A stretch of DNA of 64,000 nt from Takakia lepidozioides (Eukaryota > Plantae > Bryophyta), in contig CM060734.1 in assembly GCA_030704615.1 (NCBI GenBank), forward strand, positions 12,400,001-12,464,000. The letters run 5' to 3'. Below, one piece after another: positions 1,679 through 18,356 of the stretch. The position numbers and the translations under genes are program-made. Below the pieces are notes generated by a model. It did no database searches and had not been told where the DNA came from. It worked only from the letters and a program-made list of their open reading frames with translations. Each line of letters opens with the position of its first letter. Positions within the stretch are counted from its first letter, which is position 1.

Positions 1679-4600
1679 GAAATCCCCAGCTAAAACCCAG
1701 TTGGAGATATGAGGCATTCCAATGATCTTCTCTCTAATAACGTCCCAAAGGGCAGCCCTTTCAAGCGACTGATTCGGGGCATAAACATTAATGAAGGCTA
1801 AGTGGCCAAAGGGGGAGGACTGTTCAGTGACAACACACTGGACTCGTCCTTGAACCCAATTTTGGACTTCAAGAATGCATCCTTCTCTGCTATGGAGTTA
1901 ATGCAAGCTGCCGAGGTGCTGGCCTCCCTCAAAACTCCAGGCCTTGACGGGCTCCTTGTAGAGTTCTTCCTGGCCCTGTGGGATTCTTGGTGACGACTTT
2001 CTTCGAATGGCTGATGACGTCTTGGAGAAATGCATCATGCCTTCGCAGCTATCAAAAGGTGTTATCACACTCATCTACAAAAAAGGCAACAAGGAAAGTT
2101 TGGCTAACTACAGACCTATCACGCTATTGAACTCAGCTTATAAAATTATCGCTAAGGCTTTAGCATTGCGCCTGCAACCCTTGCTATCTAAGCTCATCAG
2201 ACCGGAGCAGACAGGCTTCTTTAAAAACAGGATGATTTTAGATAACATCTTGCTGGTCAATGAAGCCCTTCACTTAGCTCATTCTGAAAACCAGCCTTTG
2301 GCCTTGCTTATGTTGGACTTTGAAAAGGCTTTCGATAACATAAATTGGAGCTTCCTCTTGGGGGCCCTACATGCTGTCGGAATCAACTTCCTCAAATGGA
2401 TCCAAATCCTGCTGTCCTCGGCCTCTAGCAGAGTTATGCTCAATGGCATGATTGCAAAGGCCTTCCCTCTTTTTAAATCGGTCAGACAGGGATGTCCTCT
2501 CGCCCCCTTGTTCCTGATTGCAGCGGATGGTTTAAGTCATCTTATGGACAAGAGGAAAGACTCGCTGGGTCTGATAATTTCCAACTCCGGTGATGACCCT
2601 CTCTCTTCCTCGATTAAATCATCACTCTATGCTGATGACACCACGCTCTTCATTGACAACAGTCAGGGAGCTAATGTGGAAGCAACCCTTAGTTCACTCA
2701 CTGCCTTCTGTGGAGCCTCGGGGTTGAAAATCAACTGGAACAAATCAGTCGGGCTGCTCAGTCAGCTCTCAGACCCCTCTGCAGCTTGCCACTGTGATAC
2801 TTGGGGGTTGGATCTCGGTCTGAAATGGCTGCAGAATGGTCAAACACACGAGCTGTTGGGACACTTTGTCGGCATCAACCTCAATGATGATCTTCGCTTC
2901 TCAACAGTGCTCATGAAGCTCAAACGGAGGCTTACTTACTGGTGTTCAGTTCATCTTTCAATCATTGGAAGAGCGCTAATAGCGAATCAAGTCCTTGAGG
3001 CTTCAATGTGGTTTGTCTCCTCGGTATGGGCCCCTGGCACGCCAATCATTAAACAGATTAAATCCTCGATGAGGAACTTTATTTGGGGAGCCTCACCTAC
3101 TTCTCCCAGCAGACGGGCGCTTGTTAGCTGGGATCAACTTTGCCAGAAGAAAAAGAATGGGGGCCTTGGGGTTTTGGATCCTCAAAAACAAATTACTTCC
3201 CTACTTGCAAAGTGGGTTCCTAGGGTGTTAACACACCTCTCCAGCCCCTGGAGCCGACTGGTGAGACAGCATATCATTGCAGCCATACCCCGAACCAGTG
3301 CTAAATGGAAACATTCCCTTTAGATGGATGGTGCAAGGGGACCAATCGAATTCAAAGCCAGGCTTGAGTTCTCAAGCGTGGAAGTCCATTTGGAGCGCCT
3401 GGTGTAAGATTCGCCCAAAAATTGCCTTCTACTTGTCACGAAGTCCTTAGACAGCCGCTCTTTGGTAATTACAACAGGGATTCTGAATTCTTGATTTCCT
3501 GCTCCAAGCGCTGGGCTGAGTGGGAAGAAGCCGGGCTTTCGCATCTTTTGCATTTTTGGAATATTTCAACCAACTCCTTAATCTCGCCCTCCTCTGCTGC
3601 TGAAGGCTTCTCTCAGAGAAGGATACATCTTGGCTGGGACTCTGTAGTGGGCAGTTTACCTTCAAGTTGGACAGATCTACTGTCTCAACCCCACCTCTTG
3701 AAACTGCCAGGCTGGTTTGGATGGTCAGTGGGGCCCAACCTTAGAGCGTTTTTTGCCACTTCCTGCGTGGAACACTCTCTCTCTGGCATCAGCTTTAAGG
3801 TCAGAAAAATTGGGTTGCTTTTTGCCCCTGAAGTAGCTCAAGTTCCAGATACCAGCAGTTTATACGAGATCAGGGTATGTTGTCTCCTCTCGGGCAACCC
3901 CAGGCCTGAACCTCCTCTCGAGTTGCAACATTATAGTGGCTCTTTCATTTGGTTTCTTTCAGCCCCATTGAAGCTACTGCAATTCGACCCCGGAGAGTGG
4001 TTCTGGAGAAATAAGGGTCATGATCCATTCTTTAAGTATTCAGTCAAGACGGGTATTCTCTGCTATCTCCTAAGAGAGGGTTTGACAGGAAATGGAACTC
4101 TAAGTGGGCTCATCGTCCTGGTCCTCCGATACCTTGGAAAAGGGTTTGGGCCGATATATGAAAAAACACAGGGCTACCAAGGTTGCTGCCTTTTTATGGA
4201 AGGTTGCTAACAAAATTATTCCAGTGGCGGCCATGTTCCCTAATACATCTGGTTCCTGTGCCTCCTGCATGCTGGCAGCGAATGAAAGTGTGGAGCAGTG
4301 AAAGGTGAGCTGAGCCTTAGATCTGCTTTTTCCTAGAGGTACGCTTATGTCTCCAGTTGATGTCCAAATCCACAGATTCCAGCGGCGATGGCAACGAGCT
4401 GATGTCACTGCCAGCACGAAGGGAGGGAATCTTCCCACACGACCCTAGTATGTGCCGAAGCGTAAGAGGGGTAGTTCGTAGCTTTCTTTTTCCTTGGTGC
4501 TTCCGATCTTATCTCCGTCTTCTTCATGTAGATTGTCCTGCTCGAAGCTGCCTTGCTTCCGGAGCAGTACTCTTTTTTAGGCAGTCTCCTCCCTCCCTAG

Positions 4601-4979: not shown

Positions 4980-7900
4980 ATGGCGGCCGCAAGCGCTCCC
5001 ATCACTATGAAGGAGGCCTTGACGGTGAGTTGCTGGGAAGGGCTCACTTCTATGGGGGAGGAGGTGGCAGTGAGAAACCTTGTTTGGGGTGCGGTTAGGG
5101 CTGGAAGATGTGTTGTGGCGCATTTTGGCTGGTTTTCCTGCTGTTTGCGTGATACGATAGGTTTGAGGCAGGAGGTTGTGGAAAAGTGCGATGCAGCAGC
5201 AACTGAATATGTGGCAGAGATCATGTCATACGGAAATGTTGGGTGAAGTAACGCAGCTGGCGGATGTTTTCGGAATTGTATCTTTCTGTGGACTGTGGTT
5301 ACTTTTGAACTTTGATTGACAGAGGGAAATGTTGGCTGGGGAAATGCAGCTGACGAGCCTCGGAATTAATCAACAATTTATCACATTCACGCATGTCACC
5401 ATGGAGTCTGATAAGTATATATGTGTGCGGGAGACATCACCTCAAAATAGCGTGGTAATCATAGATATGGCTATGCCCCTCCAGCCGCTGCGACGTCCTA
5501 TAACTGCTGACTCTGCCTTGATGAATCCTACAAGCAGAGTTCTTGCCCTAAAAGGTGTGATCGTCTTGGATCCAACTTCTTTGTATGTAAGTTGAGAAGA
5601 TCAGCCCGGGATTAAAACGGCCAACTTACTGTAACTGGCCAAATGTAGGAGAATGGAGCACCTCTCTCGAATGAGGCATCGCTAGTTGAACCTTGGGTCA
5701 TTGCAAGAGTCGATAAGCTTCAGTCCATGAGCTAGGCGTTTTCCATGGTACTGAGTAGATCTAGGCAACGGGATGGACTAAAGCTTGGAAGTGTAATTCA
5801 AGTAGGCACTCACTGGTTCTGTTCATGGTATGTTGGAGACAGCTCAAATTCCGGGGTCGACACAGGATCATCTCCAAATTTTCAACATCGAGCTCAAGGC
5901 TAAAATGAAATCTCATCAGATGCCAGAGCAGGTTGGCCATGCTATGCGTTGATACCTCACTTCAGATACTAAAAGCAGTTGAGTAGGTCTGTTAGAAGCG
6001 CAGCTGAAGTTAATCCAAGCCATTGGAATCTGAATCAGCATAGTGGTCCAGTTGTTGGTATGGGGTGGGGTTTAGCAGGCTCATTGACTGGAAGTGTACA
6101 TGGTTGGTTGTGGTTGTCAAAGGTGGTCTTCTGGAAGTGGATCACTCCGAAGTTGCTTGGACTTGTAACTCAAACAGCAGTTTACCACTGGTCTATCGAA
6201 GGTATGGAATGCTGCACATAATATCTGGTTCCATTGTGTTAAGGAGTCTTCATTTGCGTCCGGAGGTGCGTAACTCCAGTGACAGGGGGCCTTCAGTATG
6301 TTGTTTATGATTGTCTCTGTCTCATCTGACTTTTGAAACAGGTGACTCTGAACCCCTGAGGATGTTTGAGAGAACGGCAAACTTGAGTGGTAACCAAATC
6401 ATCAACTACCGATGTGATCCCTCTGAGAAGTGGCTCGTCCTGATTGGCATTGCACCAGGAGCACCTGAGGTACTATCCGATTGGATTAGTGCATACATTA
6501 ATCTCCTACCAAACCACAATGATGCTTTCAGCTTGTGCCCGTTACCTCTTGGTTTTGGTGATTTGACTCTGTTTCATCTGTCCCCTTCCTCCTGGTGATG
6601 TGTTCTCAGAACACCGAGCAGGCTGCCAGCAACTCTCTACCTCTAACTGTCAACTATACTCTACATGTGCTTGCCAGCGTCCCAGCTGCCAGCAACCAAC
6701 CATAGACTACATTGAGATTGGGACATTGTGGTGCTTGACAGCGTCCCCAGCTCGTAAAAGGAAACATGCAGCTCTTTTCAGTGGACCAGCAGCGGAGCCA
6801 GGCATTGGAAGCACACGCGGCATCTTTTGCATCTTTCAAGGTAAGGTGTTACCTGATTGTTGCCCGTTCACTTCATTGCTAGTCAATGAGAGATGTGAAA
6901 CGAGATGAAAAGGGCTTCATACTTTTTGTTTTGAACTATCTACGATGCATGGGGGTTAATGGGTGAGTCTGTCGTCAAGTGCCTGCAGGTTCCCCTAAAG
7001 GACCAACCCTCCACTCTCATTTCATTCACAACAAAGACTATTTCGGGCGGTCAGCTAGTTTCCAAGTTGCACATAATTGAGCTGGGTGCTCAGCCAGGTC
7101 TGTCCTTTCTTTTCTCACACACCACAGTATACCCTTGATTGATCCCAGGTGACAGGGAGCGAAACTCCATCACTTTTGATTGCGTTTTCAACAAAATCCA
7201 TTAATGCCGGTCAGCTTTCGTCAAAGCTGCACATCATTGAGCTCGGGGCTCAGCCAGGTTGGTCAGACCTAGATCAACTTATTGCAATCCGACTATGCTC
7301 TGAATTTCTGGAAGTCCAGGTTTCTGAAAGTCCTGAACTATAGCCTTGGGAAGAGACGGTTTAATCGCTGAATAATTTGGATGTTTGGTTAGAATCAAAA
7401 GACGATGTTGTGTGATCTGCCAGTCTGGATATATCTGTACCTAGAACTTTTGCAGATTGAAAGCCAAGGTTGCACAGTTGTGTTGCTATTATAGCTGGGC
7501 TTCTTGTTGTGACAAACTGATGGTATTTGCCATTGGCATATGATGGGAAACTGTGCATGGAGTGAATCAGCAGAATGCCCCGGTGGTTCCATGGCAGTAC
7601 CTTGCAGAAATTCCACACCTTCTCTTGCTTCATGGTTAGCTGTGGTTAAAGCACATTTATCTATAAGATGCAGGGTCAACGAAAGACTGTGATGAGGTCT
7701 TAAAAGTAAAATGGAAGATTGTTCTAATGAATTAGACTTGTGGACTGCTTTTTCCTGTTCAGGTAAACCTGGATTCTCCAAGAAGCAGGCAGATCTCTTC
7801 TTCCCTCCAGACTTCGCAGATGATTTCCCTGTATCAATGCAGGTGGGTGTATTTGCTATGTGTTTGTTTTACTATCTTAGACATGACGAGTGTCTTAGGT

Positions 7901-10900
7901 CTCCTATTATCTTTGTGTCTCAAAGTGTTTATTTATGAAAGGGTTTGACTGGGCAGGTGATTACCTTGGTGAGTGAGCCATAGAAAAAGGTAACGAAGTT
8001 GTCAATGTTGTAGATGCTGGAACCCTTTCTGTCCAATTTCATGATGGTTTCACACTCTCTGACCTTGTTGCATTGTTGTATACAGATATCAGCAAAGTAC
8101 AACCTGATCTATGTGATCACAAAGCTTGGTCTTCTATTTGTTTATGATTTGGAAACTGCCACAGCTGTATATAGGAATCGTATTAGCCCCGACCCCATTT
8201 TTTTGACAGCAGATGCTCCTACAGTAGGGGGCTTCTATGCGGTGAATCGTCGAGGACAAGTCCTACTTGCCACTGTGAATGAGACAACAATTGTCCCGTT
8301 CGTAAGTGTACAGGTATGAAACTGTGCAGTGCTACTCTTCGCATGTGGAGCAAAGATAGGGTCAAGCATTGCGCAAGCACTTTATTTGGGCCTTATCACA
8401 TAAACTCGTGTGACTTCCACTATGAGGATTTGCATGAGCATGATGACTTTGTGACTTGGTGGCAACTGTACATTGCATGATTACTCGAAAGAATGTCAGA
8501 ATTGGGAGGTTGTTCGTTTCCTGTGCCAGTGGGGTCATCGCTGTTCTGTGCTCAACTTCTCTTGTTTGGTCCTTTCAGCTCAATAATCTGGAACTGGCAG
8601 TCAATCTTGCAAAGCGTGGAAATTTACCAGGAGCTGAGAACCTGGTATGATCAACGAGAAATTGCTCTCCTTTCCAAGAGTAGAGTTCTGATTGTTACAG
8701 ATGAATTCCTTCAAGTCACTAGAGTTATTTATTTAAGCCAAGTGTAAGGTAGCAAAATACAATGGTTGAAGCAGCAGATGCTGATTATGACATTTTAAGA
8801 CTGAGGGGCACTCATAATCTCTTTCCTTTTGTTCTCCATATTAAACTGTGCTTTGACAAAGGTATACTACCATTCCTGCTGTCACAGGTTGTACAACGAT
8901 TCCAAGAGTTGTTCTCTCAGATGAAATACAAGGAAGCAGCAGACCTTGCAGCTGAGTCACCCCAGGGCATTCTTCGTACACCGGACACTGTAGCTAAGTT
9001 TCAGGTAGGCAGACTTGTTGGCTACATTGCCCCCATGGGGTGATCAAACCATCATGGTAGTCCTATGCCTTGAATGTTGAGATAGGTGCTCTTGAGATGA
9101 ACTGCGTAGCTGCTTGATTGATAATGCTATTTGGATGGAGAGGCTTCCTTACTCCTGTAGTACCTGGATAGTCTCACATCAAGGGGGTAGTGAGGAAATT
9201 TTTGGGATTGATTCAGATTTCTCGTCTATCATTTGTACCTTTTGATTTGAAAGGACCCACAAGCAGGGTGGATTGCCAAATGTTCAGGGCATTCTCGCCC
9301 TGTGTTTGTTTGCCGTTCAGGTCACTGCGTCCTGCTGTATTGTTGTTATAGACTGTTCATGAGGGAGCTTTCCATGTTTGCAGCATGCTGAATTTAACTG
9401 GTGGCTTCTCTATGTTTTTCTTGCAGAGTGTTCCAGTGCAGCCTGGGCAGACGTCCCCACTTTTGCAATATTTTGGCACTCTGTTGACCAAGGGAAAGCT
9501 AAACGCCTTTGAATCCTTGGAGCTCTCTCGCCTAGTTGTAAATCAAAACAAGAAGAATTTGCTTGAGAATTGGTTGGCGGAGGACAAGTTGGAGTGCAGT
9601 GAAGAGCTTGGAGACCTTGTGAAGGTGAGATCCACAATGTGGCATTGTTCTCTGATTCTGATAACACCTGGTTCACTGTCAAACCTTTGTCTAGTGCATG
9701 CTCATAGACCAAGAGCTCGGGGATGGGGAATGGCTTACATTCCTAGCTGAGGAGGTACAGCTGTCAATTGAAGCTGCATAGACATTCAGGCATGGATGTT
9801 TATTACTTTTACCCCAACTTGCACTGCCAAATGTCAGGAACTGATGAAGGCTGTGGGGACTCTTAGGAGCTAGTCTCTGCTGTTTGATTGATTGATGTGT
9901 ACTCTTGTGACTGACTCTCTGACGCTCAATTGGTTTTCTTTTATTTGATTTACAACCAAACATTAATACAACCTATTGCATTCATGTAATTGGTAATCAT
10001 GCTGGTCAAACTAGCAAGGTCAAACTAGCAAGGGTAACATCTCAATTTGTTAAAGAAGGTGCACCTGTGTCTTGTATCTTGGGCCATTCTAGTGATACCA
10101 CATTTCTACCTTTTACCAGACGGTGGACAATGACATGGCTCTGAAGATCTACATCAAAGCCAGGGCTACCCCAAAAGTGGTGGCAGCTTTTGCTGACCGC
10201 AGAGAGTTTGACAAGATTCTGATCTACTCCAAGCAGGTAAACTGTAGGACTTCCGACAAGGCCAGTGTTATCTAAATGTTTGATTGGCTGCTGTCCTATG
10301 TTTTGTTTTTTCTCAATCTCATCCTCTCAAGTCATGGCATTTGACTACAAGTTATAGATTTCTATTTAATCCAGGGTATTTGGATAGGCCAGAAGCTGTA
10401 CAAGCAGGTATGGATGGTTACATTTTGTTGTGGCCTGTGCTGTCAGGTTGGCTATACGCCAGACTACTTGTACCTGCTGCAATCTATTCTGCGATCAGAC
10501 CCCCAGGTGCGACTACACCAATACTTATTTTAGTGAGACATGTTGTTTTCTTAGAGTTGACTCTAGAATATGCTTTCAGGAGTGTGTTTGTTGTACACAA
10601 ATTCAATAAAGCAGCTTCAAATTGGCTGCAGGGTGCTGTGAACTTCGCTCTGATGATGTCTCAATTGGAAGGTGGTTGCCCAGTGGACTACAATACCATT
10701 ACAGATCTGTTTCTCCAGGTATATACCCTACACTTGTGATAATTTCCCTCTGCTTAGCTTTGTGACCAGAAAGTGGTACGTAGCCCCCGATAGCTGTTGG
10801 GCTAGGTGAACCCTCCGTTTGGGATGTATGCGAAAGTGTTTACATATCTCCAATCGTGGAACAGATGGTCTTCTGCGAAAAGGAGCTGTGGCATGGGGCT

Positions 10901-13900
10901 CATTTTAGGGACATCAGAACAAAGTCCACAGTCTCTAAAAGCTTTGTGAAGGGGTAAATGTAGGATTTCTGACATCCTTGAATTGTTTCTCTGCAGCGTA
11001 ATATGATCAGAGAGGCAACTTCTTTCCTTCTAGATGTCTTGAAGCCCAACCTACCGGAACAGGGCATGCTTCAGACCAAGGTGAGTTTGGTCCTGCCATC
11101 ATCAGATTGGAGATGGAGAATGAGAGTTGCTGCAGTCTTACTTGATGTTTCCCTCCATTGAGCACTGTTGGTTTGTGTCTGTGTATAGGTTTTGGAGATC
11201 AACCTCGTTACTTTCCCCAACGTTGCAGATGCAATTTTGGCAAATGGGATGTTCAGCTATTATGACCGTCCTCGTGTTGCACAGCTTTGTGAGAAAGCTG
11301 GTCTCTATATGCGGGCACTTCAGGTTTGGGTTCTGCCTTACTTCATCAGGGGGAGCATTCAGTGTAGTGCCCAGAATTTCTGCTAGCTTCCGATCATGGC
11401 AGAGTTAAGGATAGCACGTAGTACTTTCTGCACCTTTTGTTGTGCCTATTAGAATCCTCAAACTCAATGATGAGAGGCCAGTTGTGGGGTGTTGTGATTT
11501 TTAACAGGGACATGAGAATAGTGACTGTTACTGTTTTCAAGTGGTGATTGACATAAAATATTTCCTGTTGGTGTTGGTGCAGCACTATACAGAGCTTAAT
11601 GACATAAAGCGCGTTGTCATTAATACACATGCAATCGAGCCTCAGGTATGGAATGTGGCAGACCTTGTCCTGTCCTCACGCTCTCATTCTTGAATTTCTG
11701 ATGGAGAGATCAAAGTCTCTATGACTCTGCTTGCTGTTCTTATCTATCAAGCATGCCCACTTTGCCCTTGGCAAAAGTAGGTCACTGTTAAGATGATGTT
11801 AATTTGTCTTGTTCTCTTTGATTGACCCTCTTAAGTCATTAGATGCTTTCTTTCTGGATTCGTTCCTTTTGGTATTGTCTGTTCCCTTCTGACATTTTGT
11901 CCTGGTGCCTTGTTTTCATCTCATGTAATCTTTCAAATGTGAGTTCAAAGTTTACTAGGCTCCCACTTTGATGTATATCTTATATGGATGCGTCATTTTC
12001 TTTCAGGCCTTGGTGGAGTTTTTCGGAACACTGTCAAAGGAATGGGCATTGGATTGCATGAAGGAGCTTCTTCTGGTCAACATGCGAGGAAACTTGCAGA
12101 TCATTGTTCAGGTGTGAGACCGCTAGGGATTTTGTGCACCACCTCTGTGACATGAAAGACAATAATTTCTTCTGGGAGAGGAATGCAGATTGTATATCTT
12201 ACCTGTCCTCAACAGGCTTGCTGTGATCATTATATTTTCTGTGTGGCTTTAAATATCTGGAGTCCAGTGCTTGTCAATTTATCATGGCATATCACTAACC
12301 CTGGGTTTAACTTGGAGCTCAGCAAACGTGGAAGAGTTGAATCTCGCCGTTCACCCAAGGAAGGCTGGGTAAGAAAGAAGCCTATAGTTGCACTGAGGAT
12401 GCCGAATTGAAAGGCACAACCTGGCTTACTGACAGGTTTGTATCTCCTTTAACTTTGCCTCTGAATTTAACCATGGTTATTTTGCATTTGCAGGTGGCGA
12501 AGGAGTACTCAGAGCAGCTGGGTGTGGATGCATGCGTGAAGCTGTTCGAACACTTTAAGTCCTATGAGGGACTTTACTTCTTCCTCGGTGCATACTTAAG
12601 TTCTAGGTGAGTATTGTCGACATTCTCATTCAAGATAGCTTAGTTTTATCTAAACAAGGAGGTTGCTTTCCTTGCTTAGAAAAGTTGTGGGGTACCAAGG
12701 ACAATTGTGACGTTGTTGGGATTAGACACAAATTCTGATCATCTGAATTTATCGTGCTCTTTGCATAGGATCTTAGGACTTGAATCTTATGTATCCTTGT
12801 TACCGGTCTGCAGTGAGGACCCTGAAATCCACTTCAAGTATATTGAAGCTGCTGCCAAGACTGGTCAAATCAAGGAAGTGGAGCGTGTTACAAGAGAGTC
12901 TAATTTCTACCCTGCAGAAAGAGCTAAGAATTTTCTGATGGAGTCAAAGCTGCCAGATGCGCGTCCCCTGATCAATGTTTGTGACCGTCATGGATTTGTG
13001 CCTGATCTCACACATTACCTCTATGCGAACAATATGCTCCGGTATATCGAAGGTTATGTTCAGAAGGTAAAACTAGCACTGTGCTGCTACGGATTTGCGG
13101 GGGGTTGGGACACATGGATAATAATAAATTCAATCAGCGCTACTTTGTGTCAACAATAGTCACTACCCTTCTGGTCAATAGTTTGTGTGTGATCTTTTGC
13201 AGCGATGCCCACTACACCCTACTGTGGGCACAAGATGCTAAGAAGGGCCATCAATAGTAAAAGACAAGTATCAGAGAGGATGGGTCCATCCCAATTTGGT
13301 CCAACAATTTTTGGCATACTTGTGATCTAGGGTCAGGTTTGTCCAACTTGGAGGTGAGTGTGACAAATGCTCATGCCTCCCTATAGTGTCTTTTAGCCTC
13401 CACCATGGTGTCTGTTAGGGGAAAGGGTTGATGCCGACCTCATGGGTAGGACATCAAACTGAACTGAGACGGAGCTTTCACAGGTTAGCATAATTTGGAA
13501 GGAGAAGGTGGTTGATGAATTGCTCTTTGAAGCCCTCATCGCTATCGTAGTCACATGAGACAGTGGGATGCTTATGTGGGCACATTGACTAAAGGATACA
13601 CTGGTTCTGATAAAATTGTTCACTGTGCAGGTCAATCCAAGTAACGCACCTCTGGTTGTTGGCCAACTGCTGGATGATGATTGTCCTGAAGACTTCATCA
13701 AGGGTCTCATTTTGTCTGTACGATCTCTACTGCCAGTAGAGCCACTTGTGGAGGAGTGCGAGAAGAGGTGATTGCCTTTTTTGACTCCATGCTTCTGTAA
13801 AAAGGAAATGAATACTTCTTGCATGGTTCCTCACTTTAATTGGTAGATGTGCCCCTCACAAAAGCTGTATCTGCATCACACAGTGAACTCCTCCTTGAGC

Positions 13901-16900
13901 ATGTTCATGGTCAAGTTCTAGAACTTTGTTTCTGTGTTTTTTGCACTTACCGTTTATCCCATGGTTTGATGAGGTGTTTCTGTTCATTTCAGGAACCGGC
14001 TGAGGCTGCTGACCCAATTCTTGGAGCATCTAGTGAGTGAGGGAAGTCAAGATGTGCATGTGCACAATGCTTTGGGTAAGATAATTATTGACACCAACAA
14101 CAACCCCGAGCACTTCCTCACCACCAACCCATATTATGATTCTCGCGTGGTGGGCAAGTACTGTGAGAAGCGTGACCCAACCCTTGCGGTTGTGGCCTAC
14201 CGACGTGGCCAATGCGATGATGAGCTTGTCAATGTCACCAACAAGAACTCTCTCTTCAAGCTTCAGGCTAGGTGAGCATATGATTCCCGTCTTTGTAGCG
14301 GTGGTCCTATCGAAGATGGAAGTACCAGAAACTTTAATCTTGTAAGCATGTATTGGATAACAGACGCCAATAACCAGTTGAGAAACATTGGGTCAGACCA
14401 AGTGTTCTGTTTGATTAGTCATACCAGGGACTTGAATCTAAGCTGCATAGTGTTGACTGGAAAAGCTGATCACATGTACTGGTGTTCTTGAAGGTATGTG
14501 GTGGAACGCATGGAACCGGATCTGTGGTTGAAGGTTCTCAATCCAGAGAATCCCTTCAGGCGGCAGCTTATTGATCAAGTTGTGTCCACGGCACTGCCAG
14601 AGAGCAAGAGTCCAGAACAGGTCTCTGCCACTGTGAAGGCTTTCATGACTGCTGATTTACCCCATGAGTTGATAGAGTTACTTGAGAAAATTGTTCTCCA
14701 AAATTCCGCCTTCAGTGGCAACCCCAACCTTCAAAACTTGCTTATTCTTACAGCTATCAAGGCTGACAAATCGCGGGTCATGGATTACATCAACCGGCTG
14801 GATAACTTTGATGGTCCAGCAGTGGGTGAAATAGCTGTCGGGGCAGAGCTGTATGAGGAGGCTTTTGCTATCTTCAAGAAGTTCAACCTCAACGTGCAGG
14901 CAGTCAATGTGCTTTTGGATAACATTCGCAGCATTGAACGAGCTGTAGAGTTCGCAGGTCGCATAGAAGAGGATGAAGTGTGGAGCCAGGTGGGAAAAGC
15001 ACAGTTAAGGGAGGGGCTCGTCAGTGATGCCATTGAGTCCTTCATTCGTGCAAATGATGCCACTCAGTTTAATGAGGTGATCAATGAAGCTCAGAAGGTC
15101 AGGGCCTTTGAGGATCTGGTCAAGTACTTGCTGATGGTGCGCAAGAAGGTGAAGGAGCCCAAGGTGGACTCTGAGTTGATCTATGCCTATGCCAAGATTG
15201 ATCGACTGGGAGAGATTGAGGAGTTCATTGTCCAGCCCAATGTTGCCAACTTGCAGAACGTTGGGGACCGTCTCTTTGATGAAGCACTCTATGAGGCTGC
15301 CAAGATCATCTTCACTCACATTTCCAACTGGAGCCGCCTTGCAAGTACACTTGTGAAGCTGCGCCAATTCCAAGCAGCGGTGGATGCTGCCCGGAAGGCC
15401 AATAGCTCCAAGACGTGGAAGGAAGTATGCTTTGCCTGTGTTGATGCAGAGGAGTTCCGGCTGGCTCAAATTTGCGGTCTCAATGTCATTGTCCAGGTAT
15501 GTATTGAAGTTGTAGTGTCTGCTAAATATTGTGCAGCAATGTGGCCTTATGTTGTTTGTTTCAGTCTTGATGGAAGCTCTCAACTCTCAGGTCATGTAAC
15601 AACTCTGGTTTGTACAAATTCTTCCTCTGAGAATCAGTACAGGCTACCTGAACTGTTAATGTTGCAAAAGTGTTCGAGAAAATTAAGGGAATTTGTTGTT
15701 GCAATGTGGGTCCAGGTCGACGATTTGGAAGAGGTGAGCGACTACTACCAGAACAAGGGTCGCTTTGATGAGCTTATTACATTGATGGAGAGTGGACTAG
15801 GCCTGGAGCGCGCCCACATGGGTATTTTCACAGAGCTTGGAACTCTGTATGCTAAGTACCGGCCAGACAAGCTGATGGAGCACCTCAAACTCTTTTCCAC
15901 GCGCATTAACATCCCAAAGCTCATCCGTGTGTGCGACGAGCAACAGCACTGGAAGGAGCTTACGTACCTGTACATCCAATACGATGAATATGACAATGCA
16001 GCTGCGACCATAATGAGTCATTCCCCAGAGGCCTGGGACCACATGCAGTTTAAGGATGTGTCTGTCAAGGTGGCAAATGTGGAGCTTTACTATAAGGCCG
16101 TACATTTCTATCTACAGGAGCATCCGGATCTCATCAACGATCTATTGAATGTCTTAGCTGCACGTGTGGACCATACCCGCGTGGTGGATATCATGCGCAA
16201 GGTGTGCTCTCTTTGGCTGCTGCTTGTTACTTGATGTCTTTGCCTTATCTAGGTGTCCTGACCATCTTTGCACCCTGTAATTCACTAATTATAGTCTAGT
16301 GTGCCCTTTCACTCAAGAACACTCATGGTTCAGTCTGCTCCAATGCTTATGGTTGGTTTTAAAAAACATTGTGCAGGCTGGACATTTGCCGCTTGTGAAG
16401 CCATATATGGTGGCAGTTCAGAGCAGCAACATGGCCGCTGTGAATGAGGCTCTAAATGAGCTTTATATTGAGGAGGAGGATTATGACCGACTCAGGGAGT
16501 CGATTGACATGTATGATAACTTTGATCAGATATCTTTGGCACAAAGGGTAAGGTTATCTTTCTTGCTATTATATTTGTTCTTTTCGCTGGATATTCTAAG
16601 GTTGATAGGATTTCATCCATATTTTTTACCAATAGAGAATTTTTATTAAACAGGGAAAGAGGCCCTGGAAAGTTCCTTTTAACTCCTTCAGGAAAACCAC
16701 CGGAAAAATAAAGATTTACACACCTGGAAAGGGCAAGGTCAACAAACAGGATGAGTAGCTTTAGACCAAAGGCCAGGCCGAGGATGACCCAAAGTTTGTC
16801 AAGGATTGATCCTGGGCCCTTTAAAGGGGGCCACACATTTGTTGCTTTGTGAGGTTCAGAAATAGTTATGCTCAAACTTGAGATGAGGCTTGCTTGTGTT

Positions 16901-18356
16901 GGCTCTTAATGGATCAAAAGAAGAAAACATTTAACTCGGCCTTCACGCTTTTCAGGTCTAACCCCTTCCCACTTGTTAATGACAGGTTGAGAAGCATGAG
17001 CTTCTGGAAATGCGACGGATTGCAGCTTACATTTACAAGAAGGCTGGAAGGTGGCGCCAATCTGTTGCACTCTCTAAGAAAGATAACTTGTACAAGGATG
17101 CCATGGAGACGACGTCCCAATCCGGGGACCGTGAACTTGCGGAAGAGTTACTTACATTCTTTGTGGATCAGGTATTAAAATGTTCTGATCTAAAATTAAC
17201 CCTCAGTGTTGTTTTCAAGATCACCCTCACTTGTTGGGCTTGTGGGCTTCCCGAAAGATTTGTCACTTGTGTCTGAAGAAGGCATTCACGTAGTGTATAG
17301 AAATTGTGACCTATTTTTTTGAGAGTATCTTTCTGTAGGGTGGGATAACACCATGTTTACTGGGATGATTTTTTATTTTGGTTGCGCAGGGCAAGAAGGA
17401 GTGCTTTGCAGCATGCTTGTACACCTGTTATGACCTCATTCGTGCTGATGTGGCTTTGGAGCTGGCCTGGATGAACAACATTATGGACTTTGCCTTCCCC
17501 TACTTGCTACAGGTATGTTGCATGTGTATTCTGGGCTACAGTAGTGTTGCTTGTTATGTGCGCCCATAACCACCAACATTGGCACTTCGTTCTCTTTACA
17601 ATTTCCTTTGAAGAGGAGAGCCAAAGACAAACCTGCCAGCAAACTCACAATCAACACAACCCACAGCATCGCAACAACAATCAATCAGCAAAGGAAAAAT
17701 CACCTTGTGTTGATTTCACTCATGTCTTTGCGATGCTGTATAGTACCTTGTTTTAAGTTAGCTGGCACAGTTGTCTGTGTCATCCATTTGTCACGGCCTA
17801 TCTGGTCCATATCAACGTAACAAGATATTTTGCATGACTGTTTGTCAGTTCTTGCGGGAGTACTCAACAAAGGTGGATGACTTGGTCAAGGACAAGCAGG
17901 AAGCACTCCTAGTGATGAAGTCCAAAGAAATGGAAGAGAAGGATCTAGTCGCACAATCGGTACAATCTGTTACTTCAATTGTGCCTCCCAGTGTTTTCAT
18001 GGATAGAAGAAATCACATGCTGTTCCATTTGAAATCTTCATGATATGCATTGATAATCAGCTGCACCTGTCTTTTTATTTGTTTGGAGGAAGTTTCCTAC
18101 AGGAATATGGCTTGCTTCCTCACAGTTTTTGGTTTATAATGCTTACAATGAATGGATGTGGGGTCACTGTGAAAGGCTTATGGCTCTCAGTCAGTCTGAA
18201 GACCATGTGTATTGTATGCAGAATATGTACGCACAGCTTTTGCCGTTAGCTCTACCTGCTCCCCCCATGCCTGGGATCGGTGGGGCCTATGATGGCGGTA
18301 TGCCAGCATATGGGGGTATGCCAGCCTATGGCATGCCACCTGTTGGAGGCTACTAA
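4980..18356 (+). CDS. CHC: Clathrin heavy chain, about 30 coding exons
   Basis: GT-AG exons: 4980-5024, 5350-5554, 5843-5931, 6123-6201, 6342-6469, 6742-6840, [6989-7097 or 7149-7257], 7763-7842, 8086-8313, 8579-8644, 8888-9004, 9427-9624, 10120-10236, 10447-10506, 10632-10718, 10997-11080, 11189-11323, 11583-11645, 12007-12111, 12494-12606, 12814-13066, 13631-13767, 13993-14271, 14494-15496, 15716-16201, 16377-16547, 16986-17171, 17390-17512, 17849-17959, 18222-18356. Peptides [40 protein letters not shown] and [15 protein letters not shown] are typical of plant CHC. Confidence 0.97.
6989..7097 (+). CDS. CHC: CHC alternative exon 7a ([36 protein letters not shown])
   Basis: Flanked by tgcAG and GTct. 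It is 109 nt, open in the required frame, and homologous to exon 7b. Confidence 0.85.
7149..7257 (+). CDS. CHC: CHC alternative exon 7b ([36 protein letters not shown])
   Basis: Flanked by cccAG and GTtg. It is 109 nt with the same phases as 7a. Confidence 0.9.
16620..16880 (-). mobile_element. Probable LINE 3'-end remnant inside a CHC intron
   Basis: The reverse complement contains cggcctggcctttggtct and cagggcctctttccctgtt followed by AATAAA and an A-run, resembling 42305-42383 and the tail at 4672-4744. Confidence 0.45.

Follow-up and report, generated by a model that had tools for sequence, protein, structure and literature searches.

Anatomy of the clathrin heavy chain locus in Takakia

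The window, the whole stretch of 64,000 nucleotides of Takakia lepidozioides DNA analysed here (contig CM060734.1, forward strand), harbours a clathrin heavy chain (CHC) gene in which one 109-nt coding exon occurs as two adjacent homologous copies, referred to below as exons A and B. Full-length plant CHC proteins, which were traced via a Sphagnum-like metagenome locus, gave 27–30 collinear HSPs on the window in tblastn searches; the exon cores, compared across 1,244 aligned residues, match the CHC of Marchantia and of Sphagnum at 92–93% identity, and individual exons of the gene match the Pfam families Clathrin, Clathrin_propel and Clathrin_H_link. Propeller repeats, linker and CHC repeats are found in one collinear gene, an arrangement that identifies it as a clathrin heavy chain gene. 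Window exons were analysed singly, with Physcomitrium patens database proteins serving as stand-ins for the spliced window protein. Further 5′, at 1962–4207 of the plus strand, long open stretches of 453 and 280 amino acids resemble, by eye, a LINE-type reverse transcriptase. The features of the gene and of the region around the exon pair are as follows:

4980..18356, plus strand: clathrin heavy chain (CHC) gene, ~29 coding exons; start codon at 4980, stop codon at 18354–18356
6742..6840, plus strand: upstream constitutive exon, recognised by translation; transcript contigs join its end to 7149
6989..7097, plus strand: exon A, upstream copy, 109 nt, open frame, AG/GT sites; zero depth in two transcript contig sets
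7098..7148, plus strand: spacer, 51 nt, GT..AG; proposed basis of mutual exclusion, presumed too short for intron removal
7149..7257, plus strand: exon B, downstream copy, 109 nt, AG/GT sites; the form present in spliced contigs of two runs
7258..7273, plus strand: intronic stretch 3′ of exon B including a weak GTTGGT donor; candidate regulatory element from a three-moss alignment
7763..7842, plus strand: downstream constitutive exon, whose first two bases complete the split codon; transcript contigs join 7257 to 7763

Both exons are entered in phase 0 and left in phase 1, and they align without gaps at ~65% DNA identity, with 24 of 36 encoded residues identical; the introns that flank them have no mutual similarity. 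Over the final 12 codons the encoded peptide is identical in A and B, all five differences being synonymous. Searched with a pattern that requires the tandem layout, the window gave a single match and 100 shuffles gave none. Adjacency, equal length and phase, homology and intact splice sites, the features expected of a tandem exon duplication, are thus all observed. An earlier sequence-only reading of this DNA had described two homologous 109-nt exons of identical phase with intact splice sites, a shared 12-residue end written with different synonymous codons, a 51-nt spacer forming the shortest intron of the gene, and a frame broken by inclusion of both copies; coordinates and AG/GT sites were verified, and each of the other points was borne out, the remaining 27 introns of the gene having estimated lengths of 125–564 nt (tblastn) and exon B, when read after exon A, meeting a stop codon inside B.

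The exon pair in other mosses

Two further mosses have this pair too, likewise with A before B and with a 53-nt spacer, in agreement with the conservation that had been proposed as a check among related bryophytes. Contig L006, which stems from sequencing of a moss-like relative, contains the upstream exon, an A-like exon (278–386; 109 nt, open, AG/GT sites), a spacer of 53 nt, a B-like exon (440–548) and the downstream exon; on a Physcomitrium patens chromosome (locus L017), an A-type exon at 3583–3691 and a B-type exon at 3745–3853 are likewise separated by 53 nt. The P. patens gene is represented in the NCBI annotation by isoforms XP_024386288.1 (X1, A-type) and XP_024386291.1 (X3, B-type), each of 1710 aa, which differ at 15 positions, all of them inside the 36-residue block at residues 217–252; both are database models, recovered as cluster members of the P. 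patens CHC protein.

A profile-free comparison of exon A with 1.84 billion protein representatives returned 84 short fragments, all of them at most 76% identical to A. Among these, only P0001, called as a read-through gene from a genomic contig, contains an A-like piece; it is matched in two stretches, and L006 is a sister of its contig. At three second-strand residues that are otherwise invariant, the A-like exon of L006 (278–386) carries replacements (His to Tyr, Glu to Gly and Gln to Leu), which may reflect a loss of function of exon A in the lineage of L006.

Predicted barriers to joint inclusion and joint skipping

Either exon alone keeps the reading frame, whereas translation of exon B after exon A runs into a stop within B and skipping of both copies shifts the frame. 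The spacer measures 51 nt in the window, 53 nt in L006 and 53 nt in P. patens, with its ends conserved among the three mosses, and is less than half as long as any other intron in the window and P. patens genes (at L017, all other introns are ~118 nt or longer). Steric interference between neighbouring exons has been defined by a distance of <50 nt from donor to branch point, and frame incompatibility coupled to nonsense-mediated decay is the commonest back-up among mutually exclusive exons (PMC5740500). Judged by sequence, a short spacer and frame incompatibility would together act against both joint inclusion and joint skipping, and from the length of the spacer we infer a steric block.

Regulation through RNA structure of the docking-site and selector type was considered by means of a local fold and an intron alignment, a design that covers long-range pairing less than exhaustively. 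The fold of 6960–7300 is not more stable than that of shuffled sequences (z = +1.09), and no docking-site or selector arrangement emerged, the sole conserved intronic stretch being ~16 nt long and located at the exon B donor. This stretch, directly 3′ of exon B, is kept in all three mosses (window 7258–7273; L006:549–564; L017:3854–3869), the remaining intron being unalignable, and is put forward as a candidate regulatory site.

Selection on the two exons

Selection was compared among the window, L006 and P. patens, three genes between which synonymous sites are saturated in the flanking constitutive exons (pS 0.72–0.95, with pN/pS of 0.05–0.07) and introns are unalignable beyond the splice sites. 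Exon A nevertheless lacks stops and indels and keeps its AG/GT sites in three of three species, with 69–74% DNA identity among them and pN/pS of 0.41–0.45 (Fisher p 0.002–0.02); for exon B, pN/pS is 0.17–0.25. Because frame, splice sites and a depressed pN/pS hold where the synonymous sites of the flanks are saturated, exon A has persisted as coding sequence under purifying selection on its protein, though less constrained than B. Weaker constraint on one copy is usual for the minor member of a mutually exclusive pair. Both copies are thus conserved as coding sequence in the three species. At seven columns (exon positions 2, 4, 6, 12, 14, 20 and 24), the set of residues found in A and the set found in B never share a member across the three species.

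Synonymous divergence of both alternative exons is 0.43–0.69, below the 0.72–0.95 of the flanks, which hints at extra RNA-level constraint on the alternative exons. Lowered synonymous divergence is often seen in exons subject to alternative splicing.

Single-exon plants and the origin of the pair

Marchantia polymorpha (L012) and loci L007, L008, L009, L014, L015 and L016 have one exon at this position and show no vestige of another copy; L008 is a moss-like locus with the B type only. The Sphagnum-like locus L001, also B type only, has two introns in its whole CHC gene. A search of metagenome contigs with the tandem-specific DNA pattern gave no match, and a scan with the protein pattern gave three loci, all with a single exon at this position. 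The flanking exons of L016 encode protein identical to that of the window, and the single exon of L014 is identical to window exon A at 30 of 36 residues.

The CHC at L001:5785–11307 (also L002–L005) is 97% identical to the Sphagnum compactum protein and has two introns, in comparison with ~28 in the window and P. patens genes; this looks like wholesale intron loss, perhaps by way of a processed copy. Loci L014, L015 and L016 (metagenomes ERZ1034377 and ERZ1034381) point to one plant with at least two CHC loci that have a single exon at this position.

In a tree of the 36-residue blocks, B exons cluster with the single exons of other mosses and those of type A from L006 and P. patens form a pair of their own, while window A falls among generic plant exons, apart from both. 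As 36 residues make too short a tree to decide the matter, the orthology of window A rests on its position and on the conserved length of the spacer. The moss-type signature of exon B and the sharing of the pair with P. patens mark the window as most likely of moss origin; by CHC identity, the liverwort and Sphagnum proteins are about equally close to it.

Position of the exon in the terminal domain

Structural placement was obtained by aligning a 151-residue P. patens piece to solved mammalian terminal domains (E 1e-38); the 36-residue exons alone found nothing in the PDB at E up to 1. The exon maps to mammalian residues 206–237, with a four-residue insertion in the hairpin, and encodes the loop from blade 4 to blade 5 together with the first beta-hairpin of propeller blade 5. 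The claim that the pair belongs to the terminal-domain beta-propeller is thereby upheld. AlphaFold modelling of the P. patens domain in its A-type form (mean pLDDT 68; exon 73–81) likewise depicts the exon as a loop followed by a beta-hairpin.

In the mammalian terminal domain, the arrestin-box groove sits between blades 4 and 5 and is lined by nine side chains (PMC5182127). By alignment to the solved domains, the upstream exon at 6742–6840 carries the arrestin-box residues equivalent to mammalian L183–I194, among them R188 and Q192 (mammalian numbering); three of the nine groove-lining side chains, F216, I231 and V233, fall in the alternative exon and are identical in A and B. The type-specific positions are distributed over the loop linking blades 4 and 5 and over both strands and the turn of the hairpin, beside the groove-lining residues. 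Mapping of the variable residues onto the propeller, which the sequence-only reading had called for, hence puts the seven type-specific positions alongside the arrestin-box groove and leaves three groove residues invariant. Altered partner binding between A and B forms is possible on this placement; the moss exon resembles the mammalian arrestin-box site in covering F216, I231 and V233, although any effect of the exon on binding is conjectural.

Transcripts of the Takakia gene

Transcript data comprised two small contig sets, from two runs of two studies, placed on 6600–8000. Contigs of both runs omit 6841–7148 and 7258–7762 at GT..AG, with joints 6840>7149 and 7257>7763; given the GT..AG joints, they derive from spliced RNA. 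Since the spliced contigs of both runs join through B, exon B is the main and default form of the window gene. Exon A has zero depth in the spliced contigs of both runs, neither A nor A+B being seen, and word and profile searches recovered no A-type transcript fragments from any species; the 67-aa open stretch around exon A likewise yielded no candidate by word search. Assembled contigs drop rare variants, and a blank on exon A is correspondingly weak evidence; we infer that exon A is used in Takakia as a minor or conditional form.

The junctions that had been predicted to distinguish the two forms were accordingly recovered in part, 6840–7149/7257–7763 (B) being found in the two contig sets and 6840–6989/7097–7763 (A) not being seen in either. 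The proposal that one gene yields two isoforms fared similarly: two annotated P. patens models differ only by the alternative block, but B alone is present in the Takakia contigs.

Interpretation and alternative explanations

The structural reading as a mutually exclusive pair is strengthened by the comparative data, namely the pair in two other mosses, the P. patens isoforms and the selection acting on exon A. An old tandem duplication, retained by mosses, is probably the source of a mutually exclusive pair of CHC exons. One 109-nt coding exon would have been duplicated in tandem long ago, mosses retaining both copies, each of which would supply the same 36-residue piece of the propeller. The 51–53-nt spacer would place the donor of A too close to any branch point for B, so that steric interference would prevent it from being spliced out, and mRNAs with A+B or with neither exon would be lost to nonsense-mediated decay because 109 is not a multiple of three. 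Use of the A form would give a second CHC, differing at seven type-specific positions adjoining the arrestin-box groove. A further step is offered tentatively, as an idea that we find rather more doubtful than secure: a splicing switch exchanging one terminal-domain beta-hairpin beside the arrestin-box groove would predate the divergence of this lineage from Physcomitrium and have persisted in mosses ever since, giving two CHCs with different partner preferences or regulation.

Alternatively, the duplication could be old and exon A, formerly used and perhaps still in use in P. patens, a silent relic in Takakia, only the B protein being made here, an explanation that we consider unlikely while according it real weight. 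The spliced contigs of two runs, with B alone and zero depth on A, are in keeping with it, but absence from contigs that drop rare variants is weak. Some mosses have only B, as at the Sphagnum-like copy and L008, and exon A evolves faster than B; against this, neither of the other two A copies is as well preserved as window A, with the invariant second-strand residues, the splice sites and the frame all kept, it matches the single exon of L014 at 30 of 36 residues, and the five differences from B in its last 12 codons are all synonymous.

A regulatory poison exon, whereby inclusion of A along with B, or in lieu of correct splicing, would give a stop-containing mRNA and tune the level of CHC through nonsense-mediated decay, is a much less probable role for exon A. 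The premature stop produced by A+B inclusion is what such a role requires, but the 51-nt spacer should block that very inclusion; the reduced synonymous divergence of both exons would fit selection on RNA signals, but no unusual RNA fold is present in the region, replacements in A are significantly rarer than synonymous changes, which implies selection on the peptide, and the A-only isoform is in frame and annotated in P. patens. An artefact of assembly or of recent local duplication, for which the tandem layout itself and nothing further speaks, is refuted by copies only ~65% identical in DNA with saturated synonymous divergence and by the same layout in two other organisms, L006 and P. patens, from independent data sets.

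Relation to known systems and significance

If the pair is taken as a retained, mutually exclusive duplication, its closest mechanistic parallels lie in animal genes, where the classic steric-interference pair is formed by exons 2 and 3 of alpha-tropomyosin. The moss exons resemble such pairs in being adjacent alternatives around an intron with little room from donor to branch point (a spacer of 51–53 nt in three mosses) and differ from cases of the alpha-tropomyosin type in belonging to a plant and in being known from sequence, with a presumed branch point. Among human mutually exclusive exon clusters, 9% are attributed to steric interference and 60% are homologous and frame-incompatible (PMC5740500); the moss pair is similarly homologous, equal in length and phase, and of a length not divisible by three. 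Homologous mutually exclusive clusters are well documented in animals, whereas the moss pair is a plant case; reports of mutually exclusive exons in plants have been called rare, with Arabidopsis candidates listed but unvalidated (Kassiopeia, PMC3923563).

The P. patens gene, annotated as 'clathrin heavy chain 2' (X1/X3), has the same pair, order and layout as the window, with a 53-nt spacer, and differs in its saturated synonymous divergence from the window and in that both forms are annotated there, only B having been seen here. No description of alternative exons in plant CHC was found in the literature; the pair is already present in public P. patens annotation yet, as far as could be found, undescribed.

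Retention of the pair across mosses whose synonymous sites are saturated would provide a clear, testable plant example of mutually exclusive splicing; if the proposed switch is real, the pair would join a very small number of deeply conserved homologous mutually exclusive pairs known among land plants and would be the first of them from a core coat protein. Endocytosis and post-Golgi traffic have CHC as their central coat protein, and the exon lies in the adaptor-recruiting domain of CHC; a second CHC isoform would accordingly bear on the partner choice of plant clathrin. Presence of the pair in the standard laboratory moss P. patens makes direct genomic tests feasible, including exon removal and spacer lengthening.

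The pair also bears on annotation, gene predictors choosing either exon or merging both. In the latter category, an old P. patens model from MetaClust (P0325, 1749 aa) wrongly joins the A-type and B-type exons in frame via an internal acceptor.
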